From contig NC_091979.1 of the NCBI RefSeq assembly GCF_044704955.1, forward strand, positions 54,436,001 through 54,500,000: DNA of 64,000 nt. Direction: 5' to 3'. Source of the stretch: Pristiophorus japonicus (lineage: Eukaryota). The notes under the pieces were generated by a model. That model was given only the letters and a program-made list of their open reading frames with translations, was not told the origin of the DNA and searched no databases. Positions 8,443-56,883 of the stretch are shown here, in pieces. A program made the position numbers and the translations under genes. Each line of letters begins with the position of its first letter. Position 1 is the first letter of the stretch.

Positions 8443-10252
8443 GGGCCCAAGTTTCGAGCCGCGCCTAGAACGGCGCAGTCCCGACCTGGACGCCCGTTTT
8501 TCACGCCACAAAGTGCGCCTAAAAAAAACTTCCAAATTCTCCAGCTCCCCACAGGTCGTTTGCAGCTCGGCGCAGCGCAGCACGAGCTGTAGGGGGCGGA
8601 GCCAGGTCCCTGCGCTGAAAACAGTGCCAGGACCTCTGCACATGGGTGCTACAGTGGGCGCGCATGTGCAGTAGCTCCAGGCGCCCAAAACTGTGTGGGA
8701 GGGGCCAAAGCACGCAGCCCCTAGCCCTGGCCGAATGGCCTCACTGGGGCTGCGTGAATAAGGCTCCTCCCACGGCCAGATCCTGCTTCCTCCCGACCCG
8801 ACTCGACTCCTGCTTCCTCCCGACCCGACTCGACTCCTGCTCTCAGGACCGGACCCGACACCGACCCGACCCCCCGGACTGGACCCGACCCGACTCCCGC
8901 TTCCCCCCGCTTGCGGACCGGACCCGACACCGATCCAACTCCCGCTTCCCCACCCCCCCCGGACTGGACCCGACCTGACCTCCCTTCCCCCGACCTGACC
9001 TCCCTAACCCCGACCCGAACCGAACCGACCCGCGATCCCGACCCGACCCAATGCCACCTACCTGTAAATCTGGTGCCGGGGACAGGCCCTGCCCGAAGTC
9101 TTGGGTCCTGCCCGAAGTCTCGGGCCCGACCCGTTCAGCCTCCCTCCCCCTTCTCCTTCCCCCGCCCCCATCTCCTATCCCCCCCATCTCCTCCCCCCGT
9201 CCATCTCCTTCCCCTCCCAAAACCTCCCCCCCCCATCTCCTTCCCCCCCATCTCCTTCCCCCCCATCTCCTTCCCCCCCCATCTCCTTCCCCCCCCATCT
9301 CCTTCCCCCCCCATCTCCTTCCCCCCCATCTCCTTCCCCCCCATCTCCTTCCCCCCCCCCATCTCCTTCCCCCCCATCTCCTTCCCCCCCATCTCCTTCC
9401 CCCCCCATCTCCTTTCCCCCCTCTCCTATCCTCCCCTTGTTTCCCCCCTTTTTCTTCCCTCCTTCTCCTCCCCCCTTCCCCCTTCTCCTCCCCCACTTCC
9501 CCCTTCTCCTCCTCCCCCCCATCCCCACCTCCCCCTTCTCCCCCTTCCCTCCCTCTGCTCCCCCCCTCTCCCTCTACACCCCTCCCCTCTCCCTCTACAC
9601 CCCTCCCCTCTCCTTCTACACCCCTCCTCCCCCTCCCCTCGCTGTCAAAAACACAGACACTGACAGACAGAGAATGAGAGACACACACAGACAGATAGAG
9701 ACACTGACAGAGACACACTGGGGGGGGGGACATCCCAGCACGCTGTTGGAGGGCTTTCGGTGCTGCAGTCGGTAAGTAGAAAATGTTTTATTTATTGATT
9801 TAAAAACATTTTTTATTTCTTCTTAATTTTTTTTGATTGATTTATTGATGTTTTTATAATTTATTATTGATAATGGCTCTTTATTTGTAAAACTGAAGTG
9901 TTTAATGTTTGTAAACTTCCCTTTAAACCCCCCCCCCCATTCCCTACGCCTGATTTGTAACCTACGCCTGATTTTCTAAAGTGTAGATAAGGTTTTTTCG
10001 AGCGTACAAAAATCTTCACTTACTCCATTCTAAGTTAGTTTGGAGTAAGTTTTCACTGACGAAACTTTGAAAACAGGCGTAAGTGGCCGGACACGCCCCC
10101 TTTTGAAAAAAAAATTCTGTTCCAAAGTGAAACTGTTCTAACTGACTAGAACTGGAGCAAACTAAATGACGAGAATTTCGATTTCTAAGATGCTCCATTC
10201 TACACCAGTTGCTCCTAAAAATCAGGAACAAATCATGGTGAAACTTGGGGCC
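8443..10252. mobile_element. Non-autonomous PIF/Harbinger element (MITE)
   Basis: TIRs gggcccaagtttc / gaaacttggggcc, 3-bp TSD ATA; arms shared with the copy at 37712-39346. Confidence 0.85.
9140..9640. repeat. C-rich minisatellite (ccccccatctcctt)n inside MITE
   Basis: Tandem 15-16 bp units followed by low-complexity C/T sequence; source of the spurious Pro/Gly ORFs. Confidence 0.9.
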
Positions 10253-11308: not shown

Positions 11309-11375
11309 TGCGATGGGAATTAAACCCAGGTCAACTACTTGGAAGGCAACCATGCTTACCACTGCACCACCTTCA
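11309..11375 (-). pseudogene. tRNA-Gly(TCC) pseudogene
   Basis: Minus strand reads ggtggtgcagtggtaagcatggttgccTTCCAAgtagttgacctgggtttaattccc, colinear with vertebrate tRNA-Gly-TCC. T-loop and acceptor stem are decayed. Abuts a CR1 tail at 11213-11295. Confidence 0.75.
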
Positions 11376-20519: not shown

Positions 20520-23281
20520 AGTGGTTCATTCTCGGGTTGGCATTCAGTAACTAGTGGGGTGCTGCAGGGATCAGTGCTAGGACACCAGCTATTTACAATC
20601 TATATTAACGACTTAGGAACATAGAAAATAGGTGCAGGAGTAGGCCATTCTGCCCTTCGAACCTGCACCACCATTCAATAAGATCATGGCTGATCATTCA
20701 CCTCAGTACCCCTTTCCTGCTTTCTCTCCATACTCCTTGATCCCTTTAGCCGTAAGGACCATATCCAACTCCCTCTTGAATATATCTAACGAACTGGCAT
20801 CAACAACTCTCTGCGGAAGAGAATTCCACAGGTTAACAACTTTCTGAGTGAAGAAGTTTCTCCTCATCTCGGTCCTAAATGGCTTACCCTTATCCTTAGA
20901 CTGTGACCCCTGGTTCTGGACTCCCCCAACATCGGGAACATTCTTCCTGCATCTAACCTGTCCAGCCCCGTCAGAATTTTATATGTTTCTAAGAGATCCC
21001 CTCTCATTCATCTAAATTCCAGTGAATACAGGCCCAGTCTATCCAGTTTCTCCTTATATGTCAGTCCTGCCATCCCAGGAATCAGTCTGGTGAACCTTCG
21101 CTGCACTCCCTCAATAACAAGAACGTCCTTCCTCAGATTAGGAGACCAAAACTGAATGCAATATTCCAGGTGAGGCCTCATCAAGGCTCTGTATAGCTGC
21201 AGCAAGACCTCCCTGCTCCTATACTCAAATCCCCTCGCTATGAAGGCCAACATGTCATTTGCCGCCTTCACCGCCTGCTGCACCTGCATGCCAACCTTCA
21301 GTAACTAATGTACCATGACACCCAGGTCTCATTGCAACTCCCCTTTTCCTAATCTGCCGCCATTCAGATAATATTCTGCCTTCGTGTTTTTGCCACCAAA
21401 GTGGATAACCTCACATTTATCCACATTATGCTGCATCTGCCATGCATTTGCCCACTCACTAACCTGTCCAAGTCACCCTGCAGCCTCTTAGCATCCTCCT
21501 CACAGCTCACACTGCAACCCAGCTTACTGTCATCTGCAAACTTGGAGATATTACTCAATTCCTTCATCTAAATCATTGTAAATAGCTGGGGTCCCAGCAC
21601 TGAGCCCTGCGGCACCCCACTAGTCACTGCCTGCCATTCTGAAAAGGACCCGTTTATCCCGACTCTCTGCTTCCTGTCTGCCAACCAGTTCTCTATCCAC
21701 GTCAATACATTACCCCCCATATCATGTGCTTTAATTTTGCACACCAATCTCTTGTGTGGGACCTTGTCGAAAGCCTTTTGAAAGTCCAAATACACCACAT
21801 CCACTAGTTCTCCCTTGTCCACTCGACTAGTTACATCCTCAAAAAATTCTTGAAGATTTGTCAAGCATGATTTCCCTTTGATAAATCCATGCTGACTTGG
21901 ACCGATCCTGTCACTGCTTTCCAAATGCGCTGCTATTTTATCTTTAATAATTGATTCCAACATTTTCCCCACTACTGATGTCAGGCTAACCGGTCTATAA
22001 TTCCCCGTTTTCTCTCTCCCTCCTTTTTTAAAAAAGTGGTGTTATATTAGCTACTCTCCAGTCCATAGGAACTGATCCAGAGTCGATAGACTGTTGGAAA
22101 ATGATTACCAATGCATCCACTATTTCTAGGGCCACTTCCTTAAGTATTCTGGGATGCAGACTATCAGGCCCTGGGGATTTATCGGCCTTCAATCCCATCA
22201 ATTTCCCTAACAATTTCATGACTAATAAGGATTTCCTTCAGTCCCTCCTTCTCGCTAGACCCTCGGTCCCCTAGTATGTGTCTTCCTTCGTGAAGGTCGA
22301 GGTTCACCTCTCCGGGCACATTGGAAGAAGGGACTGAGTGTAATGTAGCCAAGTTTGCTGATCATACAAAGATGAGAGGAAAAGCAATGTGTGAGGAGGA
22401 TGCACAAAATCTGCAAAAGGACATAGACATGCTAAGTGAGTGGGCAGAAATTTGGCAGATGGAGTATAATGTTGGAAAATGTGAGGTCATGCACTTTGGT
22501 AGAAAAAAAATCAAAGAGCAAGTTATTATTTAAATGGAGAAAGATTGCAAAGTGCTGCAGTACAGCAGGACCTGGGGTTACTTGTGCATGAAACACAAAA
22601 GGATAGTATGCAGGTACAGCAAGTGATCAGGAAGGCCAATAGAATCTTGGCCTTTATTGCAATGGGGATGGAATATAAAAGCAGGAAAGTCTTGCTACAG
22701 TTGTACAGGGTATTGGTGAGGCCACACCTGAAATACTGCGTCCTGTTTTGGTTTCCATATTTACGAAAAGTTATACTTTTGCTTTGGGGGCAGTTCAGAG
22801 AAGGCTCACTCGGTTGATACTGGGGATGAGGGGGTTGACTTATGAGGAAAGGTTGAGTAGGTTGGGCCTCTACTCATTGGAATTCAGAAGAATGAGAGGT
22901 GATCTTATCGAAACATATAAGATTATGAGGGGGCTTGACAAGGTGGATGCAGAGAGGACGTTTGCACTGATGGGGGAGACCAGAACTAAAGGGCATGGTC
23001 TTAGAATAAGGGGCCGCCCATTTAAAATGAAATGAGGAGAAATTTCTTCTCTTTGAGGGTTGTAAATCTGTGGAATTCGCTGGCTCTTACAGAGCTGTCA
23101 AAGCTGGGACATTGAATAAATTTAAGACAGAAATGGACAGTTTCTTAAACGATAGGGTTATGGGGAGTGGGCCGGGAAGTGGAGCTGAGTCCATGATCAG
23201 ATCAGCTATGATCTTATTGAATGGCGGAGCAGGCTCGAGGGGCCGTATGGCCTACTACTCCTCCTATTTCTTATGTTCTTA
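20520..23281 (+). mobile_element. 5'-truncated CR1 split by an antisense CR1
   Basis: RT reads ...[10 protein letters not shown] at 20614 and resumes LEEGTECNVAKFAD at 22321; tail at 23281. Confidence 0.9.
20617..22295 (-). mobile_element. 5'-truncated CR1
   Basis: RT peptides in ORFs 21568-21972, 22028-22219 and 21008-21289 (QHGFIKGKSCLTNL, YLDFQKAFDKVPH). Confidence 0.93.
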
Positions 23282-23819: not shown

Positions 23820-25374
23820 ACACCCTCCCCCCCCCCCCAAAATAAAAGTCAATAGTATAACTATTTACAATGTGAGTCGATCTGGGGCCTTCCTTTCCCT
23901 GGTTGATCGTCTCTGTGCAAATGATGGTTTTGGTGAGTCATTTGTTCGGCCCTTGCTGGGCTGCTGTGCAGCTGGCCTTGCTGGGCTGCTGGATGTGATG
24001 AGTCCTGCTAGGCTGCTGCGGGTGATGGGTTCTGCTTTGTGATCAACCGCTGGGTCGGATGCCACTTGTGTGTGTTGGAGGGTCGAAAAAGGTGGAGTCT
24101 ATTGTGGATTGTTCTGTATAGTCTGTAAATCTGAGTTTGGTTTGGTCCAAGTGTTTCCTGCAGATGAGTCAATTTGAGAGTTTGACCACACTCTACTCCC
24201 CTCTTTGGCCAAAACAGTGCCAGGAAGCCACTTGGGACCTTGTCCACAGTTCAACACAAATACAGGATCATTTATCTCAATTTCATGTGACACATTTGCG
24301 CGATCATGATATGTATTCTGTTGAAGCCGCCTGCTCTCTACCTGTTCATGTAGATCAGGGTGGACTAACGAGAGCCTTGTCTTTTCATGAGCAGTTCAGC
24401 GGGAGGGGCCCCAGTGAGCGAGTGGGGTCTTGTGTGGTAACTGAGCAGGTCTCGGGATAAGCGAGTCTGCAGTGAGCCTTCAGTTACCCTTTTCAAGCTC
24501 TACTTGATTATTTGAACTGCTCGTTCTGCCTGACCATTGGACGCTGGTTTAAACGGGGCAGATGTGACATGTTTGATCCCATTGCGGGTCATGAACTCCT
24601 TGAACTCGGCACTGGTAAAGCACGGCCCATTGTCACTTACAAGGACATCAGGCAGGCCGTGCGTGGCAAACATGGCCCATAGGCTTTCAATGGTGGCAGC
24701 GGACGTGCTTGCCAACATTATCACACGTTCAATCCATTTGGAGTACGCATCTACAACCACTAAGAACATTATTCGCAAGAATGGGCCTGCATAGCCGACA
24801 TGGACCCTGGACCACGGTTTGGAGGGCCAGGACCATAAACTTAGTGGCACCTCCCTGGGTGCAATGCTTAACTGTGAACATGTATTACATTTGTGCACGC
24901 AGGACTCTTAAGTCTGCATCGATACCGGGCCACCGCACGTGGAATCTGGCTATTCCTTTCATCACTACGATGCCTGGGTGGATGCTGTGGAGATCACCAA
25001 TGAAAGTGTCTCTGCCCTTTTTTGGCACCACTACCCGATTACCCCATAGGAGGCAGTCTGCCTGTATAGACATTTTATCTTTGCGCCGCTGGTACGACTT
25101 TATTTTTTCCTGCATCTCTAACGGGACACGAGACCAACTCCCGTGGAACACAGTTTTTTTAACTAAGGACAGTAAGGGGTCCTGGCTCGTCCAGGTTCTA
25201 ATCTGTCGGGCGGTAACAGGTTTTTGCTCACTCTCGAATGTTTCTGTTACCATAACTAAATCTGCAAGCTGTGCCATCTCCACCCCGGTGGGGGGCAATG
25301 GCAGCCTACTGAGAGCATCGGCACAATTTTCTGTGCCTGGCCAGTGGTGGATGGCATAGTTGTATGTGGACAAC

Positions 25375-25737
25375 GTCGCTTCTCGGCCTTTTGGCTAAGA
25401 TCATGCGTAACTGACCTGACAGGGGAGTAGCCACCATGACCTCCGGGTGGTTCTCCCTGGATCAGGAAGGTATATGCTTGCTTTTTTGGAAACAGGAGGT
25501 GGGTGGGGTGGCTTGACCCATCCACCTCCACGGAGGTGTGTGGGGGACCTGACCCATCCACCTCCATGGCACGAACCTGGTATTGCAGTACTTCCAGGAA
25601 CGGTGCAGTGGCTCTAGGCCTTTTGGCTAAGAGCATTGGCGCAGAGTGATCCTTGGCGTGTGCAAGGTGACCTCTGGCGTTTGTGATTTGACAAAGAATT
25701 GGAACGATTGGCTACGAATTTCAAAAAAAAAAAAAAA
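25375..25737 (+). mobile_element. Chimeric U2/U1 snRNA-derived SINE-like element, copy 1
   Basis: U2 5' end (tcgcttctcggccttttggctaagatca), U1-like segment (actgacctgacaggggag..ccatga..ggtggttctccc), U2 3' half (tttttgga..acctggtattgcagtacttccaggaacggtgca), second degenerate U2 5' end, unique tail, A15. Confidence 0.85.
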
Positions 25738-25754
25738 CGTGAGCACCCATCTCC

Positions 25755-26099
25755 CCTTTTGGCTAAGATCATGCGTAACTGACCTGACAGGGGAGTAACC
25801 ATGACCCCAAAGTGGTTCTCCCTGGATCAGGACGGTGGTTCTCCTATGCTTTTTGGAAATAGGAGGTGGGTGGGGTGGCTTGACCCATCCACCTCCACGG
25901 AGGTGTGTGGGGGGCCTGACCCATCCACCTCCATGGCACGAACCTGGTATTGCAGTACTTCCAGGAACGGTGCATTTGGCTCTAGGCCTTTTGGCTAAGA
26001 GCATTGGCGCAGAGTGATCCTTGATGTGTGCAAGGTGACCTCTGGCGTTTGTGATTTGACAAAGAATTGGAAAGATTGGCTACGAATTTAAAAAAAAAA
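25755..26099 (+). mobile_element. Chimeric U2/U1 snRNA-derived SINE-like element, copy 2
   Basis: Same architecture, 5'-truncated by ~12 nt, with poly(A). Flanked by an 18-bp TSD aacgtgagcacccatctc (25736-25753) / aacgtgagaacccatctc (26098-26115). Confidence 0.85.
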
Positions 26100-28640
26100 C
26101 GTGAGAACCCATCTCTGGATGTGGGCCGATGCATTCATTTTTATCCACTTGCTTTCAGAAAAGAGGGATATAAGCAAATTTGAGCTCGAACAGATAATGA
26201 TGCATTTTCTTTACCCCGTAAACACATGCTAAGGCTTCTTTTTCGATCATATTGTAGGCCCTTTCGGCTTTAGATAGACTTCTGGATGCATAAGCAACTG
26301 GTTGCAATTTCCCAAACTCATTAGCTTGTTGCAATACACACCCGACCCTGTACGTCAACGTGTCATATGGTAGTACCAAATGCTTACATGGATCGTACAA
26401 CACAAGTAATTTGTTTGAATATAACAGCTTCCTAGCTTTCTCAAAGGCATTTTCTTGGCTTTTGCCCCATACCCATTCATCTCCTTTACGCAGTAAAGAG
26501 TGCAGGGGTTCTAACAATGTGCTAAGACCCGGTAAGGGGTTTCCAAAATAATTCAGGAATCCTAGAAATGACCGCAGCTCCATTACGTTCTGTGGTCTCG
26601 GTACGTTCTTGATTTCCTTCGTCTTCGAATCGGTGGGCCTGATGCTGTCTGCCGCGATTCTTCTCCCCAGGAACTGCACTTCAGGCACCAGGAAAACGCA
26701 CTTCGAGTGTTTTATCCTGAGCCCCACACGATTGAGCCGACTAAGAACCTCCTCCAGGTTCTGCAGCTGCTCGACGGTGTCCTGACCTGTAACCAAGATG
26801 TCGTCCTGGAAGACCACGGTGCGCGGGACCGACTTCAACAAGCTTTCCATGTTCCTCTGGAATATCGCCGCGGCCGATCGAATCCCAAACGGGCATCTGT
26901 TGTAAATGAAGAGACCTTTGTGGGTGTTGATGCAGGTGAGGCCTTTCGATGATTCCTCCAGCTCCTGCGTCATGTAGGCCGAGGTCAAGTCCAGCTTCGT
27001 GAACGTTTTCCCTCCCGCCAGCGTCACAAATAGGTCGTCTGCCTTCAGTAGCAGGTATTGATCCTGCAGTGAGGAACGATTAATAGTTACTTGGTAATCA
27101 CCACAGATTCTGATGGTGCCATCTCCCTGGAACAATCGGACTGACCCATTCATTGAATTTGATCGGGGAAATTATGCCCTCTCATTGCAGCTGTCCAGCT
27201 CGATCTCCATCTTCTCTCTCGTCATGTAAGGTATCGTTCTCGCCTTGTGATAGATGGGTGCGCCCCCGGAATCAAATGGATCTGCACTTTTGCTCCTTGG
27301 AACTTCCCGATGCCTGGTTTGAACAGCGAGGGGAACTTGTTTAGGACCTGGGCACATTAGGTGTTGTCGATGGATGAAAGCGCTTCGATCTCGTCCCAGT
27401 TCCAGCGTATCTTTCCCAGCCAGCTCCTGCCGAACAGCGAGGGGCCATTGCCCGGTACCATCCAGAGTGGTAACTCGTGCACCGCCCCATCGTAGGATAC
27501 CTTTACGGTAGCACTGCCGATTACGTGAGTCAGTTCCTTTGTGTACGTTCTCAGTTTAATATGAATGGGAGTCAGTTCTGGCCTTGAAGCCTTGCAAAAA
27601 CCACAATTTATCGAAAATCTTTTTGCTCATTATTGACGGGCTTGCACCCGTGTCCAGCTCCATCGACACAGGGAGTCCATTTAATTCAACCTTCAGCATT
27701 ATCGGGGGACACTTTTGTGGTAAATGTGTGCACCCCATATACCTCTGCCTCCTCGATCTGAGGCTCTGGTTCGTCGTGATCCACCGTGGATCTATCCTTC
27801 TCTGCAACATGGTGGTTTGCAGGATTAGCAGGGTTTGCAACTCGCCTGCACATACATTGGAGATGTCCCATTGTTCCACAGGCCTTGCAAACGTATGCTT
27901 TCAAGCGGCATGAATGGAAACGATTATCACCCCCGCAGCGCCAACAAGGTGTTAATGGCCTTGTATTCACCACCCTTGTTGGTGGACTCTGCGGACGTGC
28001 AACTGCAGGCGTGTAAGTCCTGACTTGTACATTTAGATTCTTTGTTCACAGTACTTGCAGCGGCCTTCGTGTGCTGAGAAATTTGTTTGGTATTTTCACT
28101 GGTGGCGATAAACGCCTGGGCTATCGCCATGGCTTTACTCAAGGTTGGGGTCTCTACAGTCAAAAGTTTGCGAAGTATCACTTCATGGCCAATGCCAAGT
28201 ACAAAGAAGTCCCTGAGCATGTGCTCCAAGTGTTCTTCAAATTCGCAATGTCCTGCAAGGCGCCTTAGCTCGGCGACGTAGCTCGCCACTTCCTGGCCTT
28301 CAGACCTCTTGTACATGTAGAACCAATACCTCGCCATCAGAATGCTTTCCTTCGGGTTTAGATGCTCCTGGACCTGTGTGCACAACTCATCGTACGACTT
28401 GTCTGTGGGTTTCGCTGGAGCGAGCAGGTTTTTATGAGGCCATATGTTGGCGCCCCGCAGACGGTGAGGAGGATCACCCTTCGTTTGGCAACGTTCGCTT
28501 CTCCTTCCAGCTCGTTGGCCACGAAGTATTGGTCGAGTCGCTCCACGAAGGTTTCCCAATCACCTCCCTCAGAAAATTTCTCCAGGATGCCCACGGTTCT
28601 CTGCATTGTTGTGGTTCGTCATTTGTATCTCATCGCCAGT

Positions 28641-32029: not shown

Positions 32030-34837
32030 TAAAACACTCTACTAAACGCATGCAGCATTCGAAATAAAGTAAATGAGTTGACGGCACAAATCATTACAAA
32101 TGGGTATGATTTGGTGTCCATTACAGAAACGTGGTTGCAGGGGGGCCAAGACTGGGAATTAAACATACAGGGGTATCTGACGATTCGGAAAGATAGACAA
32201 GAAGGGAAAGGAGGTGGGGTAGCTCTGTTAATAAAGGATGATATCAGGGCAGTTGTGAGAGACGATATTGGCTCTAATGAACAAAATGTTGAATCATTGT
32301 GGGTGGAGATTAGAGATAGTAAGGGGAACAAGTCACTGGTGGGCGTAGTTTATAGGCCCCCAAATAATAACTTCATGGTGGGGCAGGCAATAATCGAGGG
32401 AATAATGGAGGCATGTGAAAAAGGAACGGCAGTAATCATGGGGGATTTTAACCTACATATCGATTGGTCAAATCAAATCGCACGGGGTAGCCTTGAGGAG
32501 GAATTCATAGAAGGCAGACGGGATTGTTTCTTCGAACAGTATGTTACAGAACCTACAAGGGAGCAAGCTATCTTAAATCTGGTCCTGTGTAATGAGACAG
32601 GAATAATAAACGATCTCCGAGTAAAAGATCCTCTCGGAATGAGTGATCACAGTATGGTTGAATTTGTAATACAGATTGAGGGTGAGGAAGTAGTGTCTCA
32701 AACGAGCGTACTATGCTTAAACAAAGGGGACTACAGTGGGATGAGGGCAGAGTTGGCTAAAGTAGACTGGAAACACAGACTAAACGGTGGCACAATTGAG
32801 GAACAGTGGCGGACTTTTAAGGAGTTCTTTCATAGTGCTCAACAAAAATATATTCCAGTGAAAAAGAAGGGCGGTAAGAGAAGGGATAACCAGCTGTGGA
32901 TAACGAAGGAAATAAGGGAGAGTATCAAATTAAAAACCAATGCGTATAAGGTGGCCAAGGCTAGTGGGAAACTAGAAGATTGGGAACATTTTAAACGACA
33001 GCAAAGAGTGACTAAGAAAGCAATAAAGAAAGGAAAGATAGATTACGAAGGTAAACTTGCGCAAAACATAAAAACAGATAGTAAAAGTTTTTACAGATAT
33101 ATAAAACGGAAAAGAGTGACTAAAGTAAATGTTGGTCCCTTAGAAGATGAGAAGGGGGATTTAATAATGGGAAATGTGGAAATGGCTGAGACCTTAAACA
33201 ATTATTTTGCTTCGGTCTTCACAGTGGAATACACAAAAACCATGCCAAAAATTGCTGGTCATGGGAATGTGGAAAGGGAGGACCTTGAGATCATCACTAT
33301 CACTAGGGGGGTAGTGCTGGATAGGCTAATGGGCCTCAAGGTAGACAAGTCCCTTGGCCCTGATGAAATGCATCCCAGGGTATTAAAAGAGATGGCGGAA
33401 GTTATAGCAGATGCATTCGTTATAATCTACCAAAATTCTCTCGACTCTGGGGAGGTACCAGCGGATTGGAAAGCAGCTAATGTAACACCTCTGTTTAAAA
33501 AAGGGGGCAGACAAAAGGCAGGTAACTATAGGCCGGTTAGTTTAACATCTGTAGTGGGGAAAATGCTTGAAGCTATCATTAAGGAAGAAATAGCGGGACA
33601 TCTCGATAGGAATAGTGCAATCAAGCAGATGCAACATGGATTCATGAAAGGGAAATCATGTTTAACTAATTTACTGGAATTCTTTGAGGATATAACGAGC
33701 ATGCTGGATAGAGGTGTACCGATGGATGTGGTGTATTTAGATTTCCAAAAGGCATTCGATAAGGTGCCACACAAAAGGTTACTGCAGAAGATAAAGATAC
33801 ACGGAGTCAGAGGAAATGTATTAGCATGGATCGAGAATTGGCTGGCTAACAGAAAGCAGAGAGTCGGGATAAATAGGTCCTTTTCGAGTTGGAAATCGGT
33901 GGTTAGTGGTGTGCCACAGGGATTGGTGCTGGGACCACAACTGTTTACAATATACATAGATGACCTGGAAGAGGGGACAGAGTATAGTGCAACAAAATTT
34001 GCAGATGAGACAAAGATTAGTGGGAATGTGGGTTGTATAGAGGACACAGAGAGGCTGCAAAGAGATTTATATAGGTTAAGCGAATAGGCTAAGGTTTGGC
34101 AGATGGAATACAATGTCGGAAAATGTGAGGTCATCCACCTTGGAAAAAAGAACAGTAAAAGGGAATATTATTTGAATGGGGAGAAATTACAACATGCTGC
34201 GGTGCAGAGGGACCTGGGGGTCCTTGTGCATGAATCCCAAAAAGTTAGTTTGTAGGTGCAGCAGGTAATCAGGAAGGCGAATGGAATGTTGGCCTTCATT
34301 GCGAGAGGGATGGAGTACAAAAGCAGGGAGGTCCTGCTGCAACTGTACAGGGTATTGGTGAGGCCGCACCTGGAGTACTGCGTGCAGTTTTGGTCACCTT
34401 TCTTAAGGAAGGATATACTAGCTTTGGAGGGGGTACAGAGTCGATTCACTAGGCTGATTCCGGAGATGAGAGGGTTACCTTATGATGATAGATTGAGTAG
34501 ACTGGGTCTTTACTTGCTGGAGTTCAGAAGGATGAGGGGTGATCTTATAGAAACATTTAAAATAATGAAAGGGATAGACAAGATCGAGGCAGAGAGGTTG
34601 TTTCCACTGGTCGGGGAGACTAGAACTAGGGGGCACAGCCTCAAAATACGGGGGAGCCAATTTAAAACTGAGTTGAGAAGGAATTTCTTCTCCCAGAGGG
34701 TTGTGAATCTGTGGAATTCTCTGCCCAAGGAAGCAGTTGAGGCTAGCTCATTGAATGTATTCAAATCACAGATGGATAGATTTTTAACCAATAAGGGAAT
34801 TGAGGGTTACAGGGAGCGGGCGGGTAAGTGGAGCTGA
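32030..34837 (+). pseudogene. CR1 ORF2 (APE endonuclease and reverse transcriptase) with in-frame stops
   Basis: 669-aa open stretch 32078-34087 (ITETW, GDFN, SDH, QHGF, DFQKAFD, FADE); TAG stops at ~34085 and ~34253; same frame continues to 34837. Confidence 0.93.
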
Positions 34838-37424: not shown

Positions 37425-39480
37425 ATAAAGCAACTGTAGATGTTTTGGTCAAGGACACTACCTTGGGGAACTTCAACAGCAATGCCCTGGGGTTGCGATG
37501 ACTGGCCTCTGACAATAACAAAGATCTTCCTTTTCATCAGTTATAACTCCAGCTATTGGAGAGTTTCCCCTTGACCATTGACCTCAGTTTTGCTGGGCTC
37601 CTTGGTGCCATTCTAGATCAAATGCTGCATTGATGTCCAAGGACAGTTACTCTCAGCTCTCCTTCGGCATTCAACTCTTATTTCCATGTCTGGATCAAGG
37701 CCTGGCATATGGGGCCCAAGTTTCCACACGCGCCTAGAACGGCGCAGTCCCGACCTGGACGCCCGTTTTTCGCGCCACAAAGTGCGCCTAAAAAAATCCT
37801 CGGTATTCTCCACCTACCTGCAGGTCCTCTGGCCCTCGGCGCAGCCAGCACGAGCTGTGGGGGGGCGGAGCCAGGTCCCTGCGCTGAAAACAGTGCCGGG
37901 ACCTCTGCACATGCGCGCTACAGTGGGCACGCATGTGCAGTAGCTCCAGGCGCCGAACTGTGTGGGAGGAGCCGAAGCACACAGCCCCTAGCCCTGGCTG
38001 AATGGCCTCACTTGGACTGTGTGAATAAGGCTCCTCCCACGGCCAGCTCCTGCTCCCCCCCCCCCCCCCGACCAGACCAGACCCGACACTCGCTCCCCCC
38101 TGCCTCCGGACAAGACCCGACACCCGCTCCCCACCCCCCCCCGCCTCCGGACCAGACCCGACATCCGCTTCCCCCCCCGACCCGACCCGCGCTCCTGTTC
38201 CCGCTCCGCCCCCCCCCCAACCCCCGACTGGACTCGACCCGACCCGCGCTCCTGTTCCCGCTCCCCGACCCGACCCGACCCGCGCTCCTGTTCCCGCTCC
38301 CCGACCCGACCCGACCCGCGCTCCTGTTCCCGCTCCGCCCCCCCCCCAACCCCCGACTGGACTCGACCCGACCCGCGCTCCTGTTCCCGCTCCCCGACCC
38401 GACCCGACCCGCGCTCCTGTTCCCGCTCCCCGCCCCCCCCCCCCCCCCCGACTGAACCCGACCCGACCCGCGCTGCCCTCCTGTTCCCGCTCCCTGCCTG
38501 GACCCGACCCGACCCGCGCTCCTGTTCCCGCTCCCCGATTGGACCCAACCCGACCCGCGCCCCCGACCCGACCCGACCCGACCCCCCCCCCCCCCCCACT
38601 GGACCCGACTCCCGCTCCCGGACTGGATCCGACCTGACCTCCCCCCCTCCCTCTCTCTGGTCCCCCCCCCTCCCTCTCCCTCTCTCTTTCCCCCCCCCCT
38701 CTCTCTCTCTCCCCTCCCCTCGCTCTCTCTCTCCCTCTCTCCCCCCCCCCACCCCCCCCGACCCGAACCGAACCTCCCCGACCCGACCCAACCCAACGCC
38801 ACCTACCTGTAAATCTGGTGCTGAGGACGGGCCCTGCCCGAAGTCTCGGGCCGGCCCGTTCAGCCTTCGAATCCCGAAAGGCCTGCCTGAAGCACTTTCA
38901 CACAGGTAGGAAGATGGTTTATTTAATCTTTTCTTTGCTTATAAATGTTTATTCAAGTTGGATTTATTTGTATAAGTATAAATAAGGATTTATTATAGAA
39001 TTTAATGACTTCCCTCCCCCCCCCCCCACCTCGTTCTGGACGCCTAATTTGTAACCTGCGCCTGATTTTTTAATGTGTAGAACAGGTTTTTTCAGTTCTA
39101 CAAAAATCTTCACTTGCTCCATTCTACTTTAGTTTGGAGTACGTTTTCACTGTGGAAACTTTCAAATCAGGCGTCAGTGGCCGGACACGCCCCCTTTTGA
39201 AGAAAAAATTCTGTTCCAAAGTAGAACTGTTCTACCTGACTAGAACTGCAGAAAAAAAAATGTGGAGAATTGCGATTTCTAAGATAGTCCGTTCTCCACC
39301 AGTTGCTCCTAAAAATCAGGCGCAAATCATGTGGAAACTTGGGCCCATGGTCTGGAGCCAAGTGGTTGCGGTGAAAACTGAACTGAACTTCAGTGAACAG
39401 GTTTTTTGTGTTACTTTATGGGACTATTGGTAACGCCTTCCGTCACTTTGCTGACAATTGGGAGGAGACGATTCGGGCAC
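37425..39480 (-). mobile_element. Old LINE fragment (family of 47745-49508) split by a MITE
   Basis: Joined flanks of the MITE match the reverse complement of ~48220-48360. Confidence 0.6.
37712..39346. mobile_element. Harbinger MITE with C-rich minisatellite core (~38040-38790)
   Basis: Perfect TIRs gggcccaagtttccaca / tgtggaaacttgggccc; perfect TSD ATG. Confidence 0.92.
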
Positions 39481-42754: not shown

Positions 42755-44978
42755 CATAGAAACATAGAAAATAGGTGCAGGAGTAGGCCATTTGGCCCTT
42801 CTAGCCTGCACCGCCATTCAATGAGTTCATGGCTGAACATGCAACTTCAGTACCCCATTCCTGCTTTCTTGCCATACCCCTTGATCCCCCTAGTAGTAAG
42901 GACTGCATCTAACTCCTTTTTGAATATATTTAGTGAATTGGCCTCAACAACTTTCTGTGGTCGAGAACTCCACAGGTTCACCACTCTCTGGGTGAAGAAG
43001 TTTCTCCTCATCTCGGTCCTAAATGGCTTACCCCTTATCCTTAGACTGTGACCCCTGGTTCTGGACTTCCCCAACATTGTGAACATTCTTCCTCCATCTA
43101 ACCTGTCTAAACCCATCAGAATTTTAAGCGTTTCTACAAGGTCCCCTCTCATTCTTCTGAACTCCAGTGAATACAAGCCCAGTTGATTTAGTCTTTCTTG
43201 ACTAAAGGTCATTCCCGCCATCCCGGGAATCAGTCTGGTGAACCTTCGCTGCACTCCCTCAATAACAAGAATGTCCTTCCTCAGGTTAGGAGACCAAAAC
43301 TGTACACAATACTCCAGGTGTGGCCTCACCAAGGCCCTGTACAACTGTAGCAACACCTCCCTGCCCCTGTACTCAAATCCCCTCGCTATAAAGGCCAACA
43401 TGACATTTGCTTTCTTAACCGCCTGCTGTACCTGCATGCCAACCTTCAATGACTGATGTACCATGACACCCAGGTCTTGTTGCACCTCCCCTTTTCCTAA
43501 TCTGTCACCATTCAGATAATAGTCTGTCTCTCTGTTTTTACCACCAAAGTGGACAACCTCACATTTATCCACATTATACTTCATCTGCCATGCATTTGCC
43601 CACTCACCTAACCTATCCAAGTCGCTCTGCAGCCTCATAGCATCCTCACAGCTCACACTGCCACCTAACTTAGTGTCATCCACAAATTTGGAGATACTAC
43701 ATTTAATCCCCTCGTCTAAATCATTAATATACAGTGTAAACAGCTGGGGCCCCAGCACAGAACCTTGCGGTACCCCACTACTCACTGCCTGCCATTCTGA
43801 AAAGTACCCATTTACTCCTACTCTTTGCTTCCTGTCTGACAACCATTTCTCAATCCATGTCAGCACACTGCCCCCAATCCCATGTGCTTTAACTTTGCAC
43901 ATTAATCTCTTGTGTGGAACCTTGTCGAAAGCCTTCTGAAAGGCCAACTATACCACATCAAATGGTTCTCCCTTGTCCACTCTACTGGAAACATCCTCAA
44001 AAAATTCCAGAAGATTTGTCAAGCATGATTTCCCTTTCACAAATCCATGCTGACTTGGACCTATCATGTCACCTCTTTCCAAATGCGCTGCTATGACATC
44101 CTTAATAATTGATTCCATCATCTTACCCACTACCGATGTCAGGCTGACCGGTCTATAATTCTCTGTTTTCTCTCCCTCCTTTTTTAAAAAGTGGGGTTAC
44201 ATTGGCTACCCTCCACTCGATAGGAACTGATCCAGAGTCAATGGAATGTTGGAAAATGACTGTCAATGCATCCGCTATTTTCAAGGCCACCTCCTTAAGT
44301 ACTCTGGGATGCAGTCCATCAGGCCCTGGAGATTTATCGGCCTTCAATCCCATCAATTTCCCCAACACAATTTCCCGACTAATAAGGATTTCCCTCAGTT
44401 CTTCCTCCTTACTCGACCCTCTGACCCTTCTTATATCCGGAATGTTGTTAGTGTCCTCCTTAGTGAATACCGAACCAAAGTACTTGTTCAATTGGTCCGC
44501 CATTTCTTTGTTTCCCGTTATGACTTCCCCTGATTCTGTCTGCAGGGGACCTACATTTGTCTTTACTAACCTTTTTCTCTTTACATATCTATAGAAACTT
44601 TTGCAATCCGTCTTAATGTTCCCTGCAAGCTTCTTCTCGTACTCCATTTTCCCTGCCCTAATCAAACCCTTTGTCCTCCTGTGCTGAGTTCTAAATTTCT
44701 CCCAGTGTCCGGGTTCGCTGCTATTTCTGGCCAATTTGTATGCCACTTCCTTGGCTTTAATACTATCCCTGATTTCCCTTGATAGCCACGGTTAACCCAC
44801 CTTCGCTTTTTTATTTTTATGCCAGACAGGAATGTACAATTGTTGTAGTTCATCCATGCGGTCTCTAAATGTCTGCCATTGCCCATCCACAGTCAACCCC
44901 TCAAGTATCATTCACCAATCAATCCTAGCCAATTCACGCCTCATACCTTCAAAGTTACCCTTCTTTAAGTTCTGGACC
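42755..44978 (-). mobile_element. 5'-truncated CR1
   Basis: ORF2 segments 42847-43947 (366 aa), 43948-44130 and 44153-44746; aacatagaaacatag tail. Confidence 0.95.
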
Positions 44979-47744: not shown

Positions 47745-49508
47745 AATTGAAGACCAAATGCAGTCTGTGATACTCCAGCAGCAGGTGCCAGTACATAACC
47801 ATCTTCAGCCAGAAGTGCTGTGGAATATCCATAATAGGCCTCCTCCTGAGGTCCCCACCACCACAGAAGCCAGTTTTCAGCCAATTCGATTCACTCCACG
47901 TGATATCAAGAAGTGGCTGAACGCAGTGCATATAGCAAAGGCTATGGGCTTCGACAACATCCCAGCTGTAGTGCTGAAGACGTGCTCCAGAACTAGCCGC
48001 GCCTCTAGCTAAGCTGCCTCTAGCCAAGCTGTTCCAGTACAGCTACAATACTGGCATGTACCCGACAATGTGGAAAACTGCCCAGGTATGTCCTGTCTAC
48101 AAAAAGCAGGACAAATTCAATCTGGCCAATTACCGCCCCATCAGTCTACTCTCAATCATCAGTAAAGTGTTGGAAGGTTTCGTCGACAGTGCAATCAAGC
48201 GGCACTTACTCACCAACAACCTGCTCACCGATGCTCAGTTTGGATTCCGCCAGAACCACTCGGCTCCAGACCTCATTACAGCCTTGGCCCAAATATGGAC
48301 AAAAGAGCTGAATTCCAGAAATGAGGTGAGAGTGACTGCCCTTGACATCAAGGCAGCATTCGACCGAGTGTGGCATCAAGGAGCCCGAGTAAAATTGAAG
48401 TTAATGGCAATCAGGGGGAAAACTCCACACTGGCTAGAGTCATATCTAACACAAAGGAAAATGGTTGTGGTTGTTAGAGGTCAATCATCTAGCCCCAGGA
48501 CATCACTGCAGGAGTTCCTCAGGGCAGTGTCCTCGGCCCAACCATCTTCAGCTGCTTCATCAATGACCTTCCCTCCATCAAAAGGTCAGAAGTGGGGATG
48601 TTTGCTGATGATTTCACATTCAGTTCCATTCGCAACTCCTCAGAAAATGAAGCAGTCCATGCCAGCATACAGCAAGACCTGGATGACATTTAGGCTTAGG
48701 CTGATAAGTGGCAAGTAACATTCACGCCACACAAGTGCCAGGCAATGACCATCTCCAGCAAGTGAGAGCCTAATCACCTCCCCATGATATTCAACAGCAT
48801 TACCATCGCTCAATCCCCCACCATCAACCCATCAACATCCTGGGGGGTCACCATTGACCAGAAACTTAACTGGCCCAGCCACTTAAATACCGTGGCAACA
48901 AGAGCAGGTCAGAAGCTGGGTATTCTGTGGCGAGTGTCTCACCTCCTGACTCTCAAGCCTTTCCACCATCTACAAGGCACAAGTCAGGAGTGTGATGGAA
49001 TACTTTCCACTTGTCTGGATGAGTGCAACTCCAACAACACTCAAGAAGCTGGATACCATCCAGGACAAAGCAGCCCACTTGATTGGCATCCCTCCATCAC
49101 CTTCAACATTCACTCCCTCTACTACCGACGCACCATGGCTGCAGTGTGTACCATCTACAAGATGCACTGCAGCAACTCGCCAAGACTTCTTCGGCAGCAC
49201 CTCCCAAACCCGCAACTTCTACTACCTAGAAGGACAAGGGCAGCAGGCGCATGAGAACACCATCACTTGCAAGTTCCCCTCCAAGTTACACTCCATCCTG
49301 ACTTGGAAATATATTGCCGTTCCTTCATTATCACTGGGTCAAAATCCTGGAACTTCCTCCCTAACAGCGCTTTGGGAGTTCCTTCACCACAAGAACTGAA
49401 GTGGTTAAAGAAGACAGCTCCACTACCACCTTCTCAAGGGCAATTGGAGATGGGCAATAACTGCTGGCTTCACCAGCGATGTCCACATCCCAGGAACGAA
49501 TAAAAAAA
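47745..49508 (+). mobile_element. 5'-truncated CR1/L2-group LINE
   Basis: [50 protein letters not shown]; short A tail. Confidence 0.9.
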
Positions 49509-52833: not shown

Positions 52834-53894
52834 GGGCCCAAGTTTCCACATGATTTGCGCCTGATTTTTAGGAGGAACTGGTGGAGAACGGACTATCTTA
52901 GAAATCGCAATTCTCCACATTTTTTTTTCTGCAGTTCTAGTCAGGTAGAACAGTTCTACTTTGGAACATAATTTTTTCTTCAAAAGGGGGCGTGTCCGGC
53001 CACTGACGCCTGATTTCAAAGTTTCCACAATGAAAACGTACTCCAAACTAACTTAGAATGGAGCAAGTGAAGATTTTTGTAGAACTGAAAAAACTTGTTC
53101 TACACATTAAAAAATCAGGCGCAGGTTACAAATTAGGCGTCCAGAACGAGGTGGGGGGGGGGGGAAGAGAAGTCATTAAATTCTACAATAAATCCTTATT
53201 TATACTTATACAAATATTATACAAATAAATCCAACCTGAATAAACAGTTATAAGCAAAGAAAAGATTAAATAAACCATCTTCCTACCTGTGTGAAAGTGC
53301 TTCAGGCACGGAGAATGCTGCAGTCAGCCTGAGGCGCCCATTCTTCCCACGGTGGGGGGGAGGAGGCGCCCGTTCTTTCCCGTGGGGTGGGGGAGGAGGC
53401 GCCCGTTCTTTCCCGCCGGGGGGGGGGGGGAGGAGGCGCCCGTTCTTCCCGCTGGGGGGGAGGAGGCGCCCGTTGTTTTCCCGGGGGGGTGGGAGGAGGC
53501 GCCCGTTGTTCCCGCGGGGGAGGGGGGAAGGAGACAGTGAGAAGGCTGCAAGTGCTGATGTGCTGATGGCAATGTGCTTTTATTAAAAAATGTTCAAAAA
53601 TTAAACAGCTACAAAGAACTACAAAAATGGCCGAGTGCCAATGTTTCCTTCACACTGCGCGTGCGCGAACGCTCCAACGCGCACGCGCAGCGTTGCCGGC
53701 AGGAAAAAAACTAATTTAAATAGTACCCGCCCCCTCCCACTTACAAAATCGGCGCGAGTGTAGGCTCCGCCCCCCTGGGCGCCGCGCCAGGCAGACAAGG
53801 AGCTGCAGGGCGCGCCAGAATCGCAAGTTTTTTTTCCGGCGCCGTTTTAGGCTCGGAGGGGCGCCCGTTTTTTATCGTGTGGAAACTTGGGCCC
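52834..53894. mobile_element. Harbinger MITE
   Basis: Perfect TIRs gggcccaagtttccaca, perfect TSD AAC; splits a Penelope terminal repeat (52735-53927). Confidence 0.92.
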
Positions 53895-55421
53895 AACATT
53901 TCAGGTCAATGACCTTTCGTCAGAACTGCTTTTATTGTATTGTTTGTTTCGTATAAGCCTATCATAAAGTTGATTGCCGGGTTGGTCACAGCAGCGTTGA
54001 TAATATAGCTTTCACCTTTAACAGAGGGGGGAAGCTCTCGAGGTTAAAATGCATTTATACAATTGGTTTCTAAACATACATTCTGTCCCAAAAAACAGAT
54101 ACATGCTGTATGTCATCTCAGCCCTGAACAAAATGCTTGAGTAGAGTCTGAAAGGACTAATGTTGCCTATGACAAAAGACCTTGAAACTCTGGCTAAAGA
54201 GAATGTTCTTTTGTACGTTATCCATGTAGGCAAGGTTGTTTTATCAATTAGAATTTGAAACTTTGACAAGGTCTAATATAATATGAAATAACTGTTGACA
54301 GGAAGTGTTACTGAGAGATGATGCAGGCTTTTTAAAAATAAGGTACAGTCAGAGTTAAGATTCTTCCCGTTTCTATTGTTTTAGCTGGTATAATCAGGAG
54401 ACAAAAAAAGACAAAATCCTAACCACTGAGAGCATATCCTGTAGGATGTTCCATCTTCTTCACTGAACTACTTAAACATCCACTTTCCGACCTATATCTT
54501 TGTTAAACAGAAAATCCAGTTGTAAAATCAACATATTGTATTTAATTATTCTCCCTGAAGTTAGTCAGTTCCTCAGTACTGTGAAATAGATGGCATTCAG
54601 TTTGGCTGCCAAAGGATATGAGGGCATGGAGTTTTCGCTCGATTTTGCTGGGTTTTTTTGCTGTAATTCCCGCGAAATTAGCATAACCGGCGCAAAAGAT
54701 TGCGGAATTTTAAGCGCAATTTGCGTTCAACGCATATCAAGTTTCAGCGATCTTTTGCACTAGTTTTAAAAACATTGCATGAGAAGCACGTCCCACCCAC
54801 CAAAACTGGCCATGCCCCCAGAGTGAATTAATCACCTTTGGGAGTTTCTGCTAATTGCACTCGTTTGCAGGACTTCGAAGGGGCTCAAAAAATTAAGCTG
54901 GAACTTTTGGGTGTAAGGACATTAATTGGTACATTTTGAACAGTTTTGAATTATTTTTTGTTTAATTTACTAAGGTACTCACTACTCTACCCCAATCTAA
55001 CCAGAAAATAGTTTTATATAATTTTTTTAATAGTCAATTTCAGTAATTTCAAATCCGATTACTCACAGGTGGTGGATTCACACCAGGGCTAGAATTTCCT
55101 ATCAGCCCGCCAGTGCCCAATCGCCGCCCAACAGACTGCTAAGACTGGGAAGATTATCGCTGGCGAAAACTTTCCCCTCAAAAAATAAAAAAAATCCGTC
55201 GAGCAAAAAACATGGGCCTTGCACCCCATTCTGGTCGAAAAAGTGCAATTTAGGGTCGATTGGGTGGTTCGTAAACAAGATGGGTAAAAAATAACATAAA
55301 TCAATAAAAATTTACCTCGGTTTTTCTGGTGTTGGGCTCTGCGGGTTGGGCCCAACACCAGAAAAACATTAAAAACAATTTTTCAAAAAACATTAACAAA
55401 AAAATATTCCGAAGACACTTT

Positions 55422-56883
55422 GGGCCCAAGTTTCCACATGATTTGCGCCTGATTTTTAGGAGCAACTGGTGGAGAATGGACTATCTTAGAATTCGCAATT
55501 CTCCACATTTTTTTTTCTGCAGTTCTAGTCAGGTAGAACAGTTCTACTTTGGAACATAATTTTTTCTTCAAAAGGGGGCGTGTCCGGCCACTGACGCCTG
55601 ATTTGAAAGTTTCCACAGTGAAAACATACTCCAAACTAAAGTAGAATGGAGCAAGTGAAGATTTTTGTAGAACTGAAAAACCTGTTCTACACATTAAAAA
55701 ATCAGGCGCAGGTTACAAATCAGGCGTCCAGAACGAGGTGGGGGGAGGGGGGGGAAGGGAATTCATTAAATTCTACAATCAATCCTTATTTATACTTATA
55801 CAAATATTATACAAATAAACCCAAGCTGAATAAACATTTATAAGCAAAGAAAAGATTAAATGAACCATCTTCCTACCTGTGTGAAAGTGCTTCAGCCAGG
55901 GAGAATGGTGCAGCAAGCCTCACAAAACGAGGGAGCCGACCAAACGTGGGCGGGGGGGAGGGAGCCGACCGAACGCGGGCGGGGGGGAGGAGGGAGCCAA
56001 CCGAACGCGAGCGGGGGGGAGGAGGAGGGAGTCGACCGAACGCGGGCGGGGGGGGGAGGAGGAGGGAAGGGAAGGGAGCCGACGAACGCGGGGGGGGGTG
56101 GAGGGAAGGGAGCCGACGAACGCGGGAGGGGGGGGGGAGGGAAGAGAGCCGACCGAACGCGGGCGGGCGGGAGGGAGCCGACCGAACGCGGGGGAGGGAG
56201 GGAGCCTACCGAACGCGGGGGTGGGGCGGGGGGAGGGAAGGGAGCCGACCGAAGGTGGGGGAGGGAAGGGAGCCGACCGAACGCGGGCGGTAGGGAGGGA
56301 GCCGACCGAACGTGGGGGGGGAGGGAGGCAGTCGACCGAACGCGGGGGGAGGGGGGGGGGGGGGGGAATGGAGCCGTTCCAGACGGCTGGCGGGAAAGAG
56401 AGAAGGCTGCAGGAAGCCTCAGCAATTGAGGAGCCATTTCCCGACGGCAAAAGGGGGAGGTCGTCGGGAAACGGCTGCCTCAACTTTCTGAGGCTTCCTA
56501 CACCCTTCTCATTGCTACAAGAAGCCTCTGTGCTGATGGCAATGTACTTTTATTAAAAAAATTTCAAAAACTAAACAGCTACAAAGAACTACAAAAATGG
56601 CCGAGTGCGAATGTTTTTTTCACACTGAGCATGCGCGAACGCTCCAACGCGCACGTGCAGCGTTGCCGGCAGGAAAAAAAATAATTTAAATAGTACCCGC
56701 CCCCTCCCACTTACAAAATCGGCGCGAGTAGGCTCCGCCCCCCCTGGGCGCCACGCCAAGCAGACAAGGAGCTGCAAAGCGCTCCAGAATCGCTCGTTTT
56801 TTTTCCGGCGCCGTTTTAGGCGCGAAAAACGGGGGCCCAGCTCGGAGGGGCGCCCGTTTTTTATCATGTGGAAACTTGGGCCC
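55422..56883. mobile_element. Harbinger MITE with G-rich minisatellite core (~55930-56370)
   Basis: Perfect TIRs gggcccaagtttccacatgat; arms nearly identical to 52834-53894; TSD not preserved (TTT/CAT). Confidence 0.88.

Follow-up and report, generated by a model that had tools for sequence, protein, structure and literature searches.

A candidate SINEU-type family in a cartilaginous fish: two U2/U1 snRNA-headed, poly(A)-tailed elements in tandem within a Gypsy pol gene

Are two adjacent stretches of U2- and U1-like sequence within a retrotransposon gene of Pristiophorus japonicus snRNA genes, the product of a single accident of reverse transcription, or members of a mobile family, and how did they come to lie side by side? 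To our knowledge, SINEU elements are the only class of SINEs with heads derived from RNA polymerase II (pol II) snRNAs, and they have been published from a single reptile order. We analysed a 64,000-nt stretch of contig NC_091979.1 (assembly GCF_044704955.1, positions 54,436,001–54,500,000 of the forward strand), referred to below as the window, in which a sequence-only reading had divided the locus into U2, U1, tail and poly(A) modules; all of these modules were recovered, with boundaries displaced by a few bases at most. The locus (25375–26115) contains one composite element twice, head to tail, and the two copies, A and B, have their modules in the same order: U2 nt 1–35, the U1 5′ end with stem-loop I, the U2 3′ half, a decayed U2 head, a tail and poly(A) (Table 1). 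Including the tails, copy A is 363 bp long (25375–25737) and copy B 346 bp (25754–26099). Copy A begins at U2 nt 1, to within 1–2 nt, and copy B is 5′-truncated by approximately 12 nt, its first base corresponding to about U2 nt 12–13. Pairwise alignment gave an overall identity of 92%, and TRF described the whole pair as a 367-bp unit present in 1.9 copies at the same identity. U2 stem-loop III is doubled in both copies (TRF period of 36, two units); on the minus strand of the doubled loops (25518–25569 and 25885–25936), sub-threshold matches to the Rfam family Prion_pknot are an artefact of GGTGG repeats. Open reading frames within the element are short and differ between A and B, and CpGs persist. 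A protein-level search with the open minus-strand frame of the element (25412–25612) gave no match, a blank to which we give no weight. The RNA corresponding to 25411–25722 folds as separate hairpins (z = −4.4 relative to dinucleotide shuffles), three of which lie in the U2 3′ half of copy A in the minimum free energy structure. The unique tail matched no Rfam family and contains no AATAAA, and further copies or fragments of the element were absent from the remaining 63 kb of the window.

The snRNA identity of the modules was assessed with Rfam covariance models. The U2 call made from the letters alone was borne out by the U2 model (RF00004), which aligned to copy A end to end (model positions 1–192, 25375–25613) with 57.5 bits, above the gathering score of 46; copy B scored 34.6 bits at 25744–25980. 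In the alignment of copy A, U2 nt 1–35 are nearly unchanged, nt 36 to approximately 87 are replaced, and U2 resumes from the Sm site onward. The U1 call was upheld in part: in copy B the U1 model (RF00003) matched with 21.9 bits (E = 0.0034 in a 1-kb search; gathering score, 69.5), covering model positions 1–48, that is, the 5′ end and stem-loop I, with high posterior probability, and the U1 module of copy A, cut at 25411 and searched alone, gave no match. The score falls far below the gathering score, which is expected when a module represents a third of the U1 molecule. On this sub-threshold covariance match in one copy, the case that the replaced block is U1-derived is good but not strong.

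The inner U2 head was recognized separately, as a local U2 match to model positions 7–26 in copy B. Pairwise alignment showed it to be more decayed than the outer head, in agreement with the earlier claim that the inner U2 5′ end is the more diverged of the two. Both heads carry the same two non-canonical bases, A30T and U32C, which suggests that the source of the outer head may have been a relative of the element instead of a real U2 gene or RNA. In Rfam numbering, nt 35 is the last position of the outer head, or nt 38 should one GUA of GUAGUA have been lost, and the inner head can be aligned to approximately nt 38. Derivation of the tail from a decayed U1, or from the outer U2–U1 head by copying, was rejected, as similarity beyond the U2 head was no better than in shuffled sequences.

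The pair sits antisense within a Ty3/Gypsy-like pol gene encoded on the minus strand, and the reading frame of this host gene defines the insertion site. On the minus strand, the far flank (26100–26174) ends ...SESKWIKMNASAHIQRWVLT, the host translation ending ...ASAHIQRWVLT, and the near flank (24885–25376) reads T-LSTYNY, continuing the ...IQRWVLT of the far flank. The same host 16-mer, CGTGAG[C/A]ACCCATCTC, abuts both poly(A) tails; because it codes for QRWVLT of the host on the minus strand, it is host sequence and not part of the element. Removal of the insert together with one 16-mer restores a continuous host frame, ...IQRWVLT / (T)LSTYNYAIHHWPG..., with no host base missing. Copy B has a 16-bp target-site duplication (TSD); at its 5′ junction, the end of the target and U2 nt 7–10 share a TCTC microhomology. 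Copy A reaches U2 nt 1–2 and has a duplication of only 2–3 bp. The 16-mer target did not occur elsewhere in the window, and by eye the Gypsy target bears no visible likeness to the U2 site of Keno (nt 30–50).

Table 1. Features of the tandem pair and its host gene (positions in the window)
Feature	Position	Strand	Description and evidence
Host pol after the insertion	24500–25373	−	Begins (T)LSTYNYAIHHWPGTENCADALSR..., then integrase core; Pfam rve on 24500–24898
CG(T), sole target duplicate left of copy A	25374–25376		First 2–3 bases of the 16-mer; T may equally be U2 nt 2
Outer U2 head, copy A	25375–25409	+	U2 nt 1–35: stem-loop I and start of branch-point region; Rfam U2 positions 1–35, posterior probability ~1
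Probable U1 module, copy A	25407–25481	+	5′ end and stem-loop I, solid to ~25466, then short junction of uncertain origin; copy B equivalent aligns to Rfam U1; hairpin fold
U2 3′ half, copy A	25482–25607	+	Sm site TTTTTTGG, stem-loop III twice (25495–25566), stem-loop IV, 3′ end ...ACGGTGCA; Rfam U2 ~95–188; TRF
Inner decayed U2 head, copy A	25608–25651	+	~U2 nt 2–38; local U2 match in copy B equivalent; alignment to outer head
Unique tail, copy A	25652–25722	+	~70 nt; Rfam blank; no significant similarity to U1 module
Poly(A), copy A	25723–25737	+	15 A
Host 16-mer between copies, left TSD of copy B	25738–25753		CGTGAGCACCCATCTC; minus strand reads RWVLT
Copy B body	25754–26089	+	Architecture as copy A, 5′-truncated, TCTC microhomology at junction; covariance models and pairwise alignment
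Poly(A), copy B	26090–26099	+	10 A
Host 16-mer after copy B, right TSD	26100–26115		CGTGAGAACCCATCTC; 1 mismatch to left TSD (15/16 identical)
Host pol, RT and RNase H part	26116–27153	−	Pfam RVT_1, RT_RNaseH_2, RT_RNaseH (26155–27153); upstream of the insertion in the host's reading direction

In target-primed reverse transcription, the nick made first, in the bottom strand, is where the poly(A) end of the new copy joins the target. Here each poly(A) tail is followed directly by the C of CGTGAG, and tails that abut the identical host base imply that the bottom strand was cut twice at one phosphodiester bond, 5′-...CTCACG^TTGTCC-3′. Two successive events of target-primed reverse transcription would account for this arrangement, the second re-using the target that the first insertion had regenerated, and the machinery would be a site-selective, APE-type LINE of the Tx1/Keno kind. 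Either order of events would fit the layout: B may have inserted first and A then entered the intact left copy of the target, or A may have come first and B then entered the target 3′ of the tail of A. Kojima (2015) attributes tandem SINEU-3 insertions of the same-site type to Tx1 LINEs that select their sites, LTR retrotransposons being among the targets of some of them (PMC4494074). We consider it probable that A and B belong to a non-autonomous family of poly(A)-tailed retroposons of the SINEU type, likely mobilized by a Tx1/Keno-like LINE.

A Tx1-type LINE was not found in the window, and the three LINE reverse transcriptase fragments present there are CR1-like or related. LINE fragments were located at 32078–34087 (+), 42847–43947 (−), 48056–48718 (+) and 22321–23035 (+), none with a U2 head; one of them carries both APE and reverse transcriptase, and the reverse transcriptase at 48 kb is just 33% identical to it, which indicates that the window contains two or more LINE families other than Tx1 (CR1-like and a relative).

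The differences between the copies bear on whether A and B were inserted separately. In the U1 module (25410–25481), A and B are 84% identical without gaps and 78% with gaps, whereas the other 240 alignment columns, comprising the U2 3′ half, the inner head and the tail, are 96–98% identical, a clustering that is significant by Fisher's test with gaps (p = 3e-6) and without them (p = 3e-4). The module differs between the copies by an indel of 3 nt, by a block of 6 nt within the U1 loop and, at the U1/U2 junction, by replacement of a segment. Because they are concentrated in the U1 module, A and B look like two source variants and not like the products of a local duplication, and on this comparison of sequences we think it quite probable that they represent independent insertions of two source variants. 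The main competing explanation is that a single full-length element inserted with a 2–3-bp duplication and that 362 bp, from about U2 nt 11 in the element through the first 16 bp of the 3′ flank, were later duplicated locally in tandem by slippage or unequal exchange at TCTC. This scenario predicts exactly the layout observed, A–16-mer–B–16-mer with no 16-mer to the left of A; the TCTC it calls for is present at U2 nt 7–10 and at the end of the 16-mer, and the 1.9 units that TRF detects are in keeping with it. However, uniform later decay does not predict block replacements and indels clustered in the U1 module while the rest stays at 96–98%, and pairs that sandwich a TSD are a documented product of SINEU mobilized by Tx1 (PMC4494074), so that we regard a local duplication as unlikely. 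Were it correct, the element would still be a SINEU-like retroposon, and the argument that derives a site-selective LINE from the shared site would fall.

All internal junctions are common to A and B, which suggests that the pair are copies of a propagating template and not one-off chimeras. The abundance of element 31-mers in sequencing runs was also considered. Apart from the probable source sample, three runs of the same organism from another study (109–165 million letters each; library types not given) contained 56–72% of the sampled 31-mers, and one run of a second organism held 31% of them. If these were shotgun libraries, coverage would be far below 1×, so that a single-copy locus would rarely be assembled; the same small runs could instead be reduced-representation or RNA libraries. 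The shares of 31-mers in small runs and in the second organism are, in this light, hints of many copies. They speak, as does the appearance of A and B as different variants, against a one-off chimeric retropseudogene, in which a single template switch by a LINE reverse transcriptase among U2, U1 and another RNA would have been followed by local duplication and no family would exist. Chimeras formed by template switching on snRNAs, with poly(A) and TSDs, are known (PMC4494074), and the window contains just the two adjacent copies; even so, we judge this origin improbable. A functional variant snRNA gene, from which a U2-like or hybrid Sm-class RNA would be expressed, is very improbable: the Sm site and 3′ stem-loops are kept, the fold lies well below shuffles and the Rfam U2 score exceeds the gathering score, but U2 is discontinuous, with U1 sequence in place of nt 36 to approximately 87 and a broken branch-point recognition sequence, poly(A) tails and target duplications are present, the 5′ flank is antisense Gypsy pol coding sequence with no snRNA promoter, and copy B has no 5′ end. 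The poly(A), the TSD and the Gypsy pol flank accord with the proposal of the sequence-only reading that these are snRNA-headed, polyadenylated retroposons of the SINEU type. We also rejected an insertion of the Keno/Utopia type in a U2 gene, because the downstream flank is the Gypsy 16-mer and not U2 from nt 39 onward; only the upstream head (nt 1–35/38) fits such an insertion, as a relic that the RNA has retained.

A search of metagenomes with a 21-mer of the tail matched 31 loci, probably by chance: they belong to one AT-rich (approximately 31% GC), largely non-coding repeat of another organism. The overlap of this repeat with the tail amounts to an exact 24-mer, or at most to 39 nt at 90% identity, and the repeat has no snRNA modules and no poly(A). 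The matching loci (L001–L031) lie on JGI contigs Ga0209489, Ga0209700, Ga0099824/5 and Ga0123340, and the matches extend past the 21-mer slightly further than expected.

The closest known counterparts are SINEU-1, -2 and -3, the snRNA-headed retroposons of crocodilians (Kojima 2015, PMC4494074), which had already been named as the precedent when the locus was first read. As in SINEU, the element described here takes its 5′ region from U1 and U2 snRNA, is shorter than 500 bp, non-coding and 3′-polyadenylated, has no promoter of its own, and shows integration of the LINE type, as seen in the 16-bp TSD and truncation of copy B and in the restored host frame. The resemblance extends to details. 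Stacked U2/U1/U2 heads precede a short old U2 head and a unique tail, as in SINEU-1C/H; SINEU-2 likewise joins a U1 5′ part to a U2 3′ part; partial duplications occur within snRNA modules, and internal oligo-T runs exclude pol III. The variation between A and B at the U1 loop and U1/U2 junction has its parallel in the subfamilies of SINEU-2, which vary at these same places (PMC4494074), and tandem insertions within another transposon likewise sandwich a 16-bp TSD. Unlike SINEU, the element keeps nearly the whole U2 3′ half, with stem-loop III doubled; its target is a Gypsy pol motif, in contrast to Mariner-N4_AMi for the crocodilian SINEU; and its host genome is a different, non-crocodilian one. 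It is also akin to U6–L1 chimeric retropseudogenes, in which an snRNA was joined 5′ to another RNA by template switching and which carry poly(A) and TSDs (PMC4494074), but those are independent one-off events with individual junctions, whereas the two copies here share every junction. A search confined to papers found SINEU reported from crocodilians only and no paper linking SINEU or snRNA-derived SINEs to cartilaginous fishes. In our reading, the pair probably represents a new SINEU-type family. The sequence-only reading does not mention the Gypsy host, nor that both insertions share one site in tandem, that copy B is truncated, that stem-loop III is duplicated or that differences between A and B cluster in the U1 module. 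New from this window are the tandem insertion at a single nick in a Gypsy pol motif, the two probable source variants and the interpretation of the U2 heads set out below.

The RNA of the element would be a mosaic of U2 (1–35), U1 (1 to approximately 60), U2 (approximately 88–187, with stem-loop III doubled), an old U2 piece (approximately 2–38), the tail and A(n). Internal T6/T5 and T4 runs mean that this RNA cannot be a pol III product, and transcription would probably be by pol II from outside the element. Neither U2 head ends more than 3 nt from the nt 38/39 site of the U2-targeting LINEs Keno and Utopia. Insertions of Keno (Tx1 clade) and Utopia leave U2 nt 1–38 upstream, and the downstream U2 begins at nt 39 (PMC4640811); the heads described here end at nt 35–38. 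Keno is of the APE type with poly(A), tandem insertions in the target have been reported for Utopia-1_NVit (PMC4640811), and the Tx1-Mar elements, which are partners of SINEU, group with Keno and have heads of U1 or U2 (PMC4494074). Unlike the autonomous Keno and Utopia, which reside in real U2 genes, the element is non-coding, approximately 350 bp long and situated in a Gypsy pol. The U2 heads were most likely gained by a progenitor that occupied a Keno-type site (nt 38/39) in a U2 gene and whose transcription began at the U2 promoter; such a position would account for the exact start at U2 +1, for heads ending at nt 35–38 and for transcription without an internal promoter. The A30T and U32C changes common to the two heads are not simply reconciled with this reading. 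For the U1 piece and the U2 3′ half, the most likely origin is a switch of template onto snRNAs, the mechanism that Kojima proposed for SINEU (PMC4494074), and the junctions between the U2 3′ end and the inner head, and between the outer head and U1 nt 1–3, look like reverse transcriptase template switches at the 5′ ends of RNAs. The idea that the family grew by serial 5′ additions does not stand as the sole account, since acquisition at a Keno site fits the U2 heads at least as well; the assignment to a SINEU-like family is retained. More tentatively, SINEU-type elements might be a recurrent by-product of Keno-like, U2-targeting Tx1 LINEs, with master copies in U2 genes transcribed by pol II and with independent origins in cartilaginous fish and crocodilians, a possibility to which we attach limited confidence.

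A second family in a distant vertebrate, with U2/U1 stacking, repeated insertion at one site in tandem and, probably, a LINE partner of the same kind, would show that this design arises repeatedly. The family appears young (A and B are 96–98% identical outside the U1 module and CpGs are kept), which makes it a place to seek master copies. If true, co-transcription from a Keno site would answer the question posed by Kojima (2015) of how promoter-less SINEU are transcribed. Because full-length copies exceed the Rfam U2 threshold, U2 genes would be over-counted in annotations of this species unless the family is masked.

Several other repeats were noted in the window. A tRNA-like Rfam match (31.1 bits) at 11312–11370 (−) lies at the edge of a repeat, D4, with approximately nine copies in the window (for example, 20614–20720), and is probably the head of a tRNA-derived SINE. 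G-rich or C-rich minisatellites with units of approximately 15–41 bp occur at 9133–9605, 38055–38800, 53317–53527 and 55917–56380, and some of their motifs are common to distant sites. The segment at 39015–39346 is 98% complementary to those at 52834–53165 and 55421–55680 (arms of 260–330 nt, 13–16 kb apart), and the segments at 52834 and 55422 are 97% direct copies of each other; the complementary arms either arose very recently as repeat copies or mark the ends of a large inverted structure.
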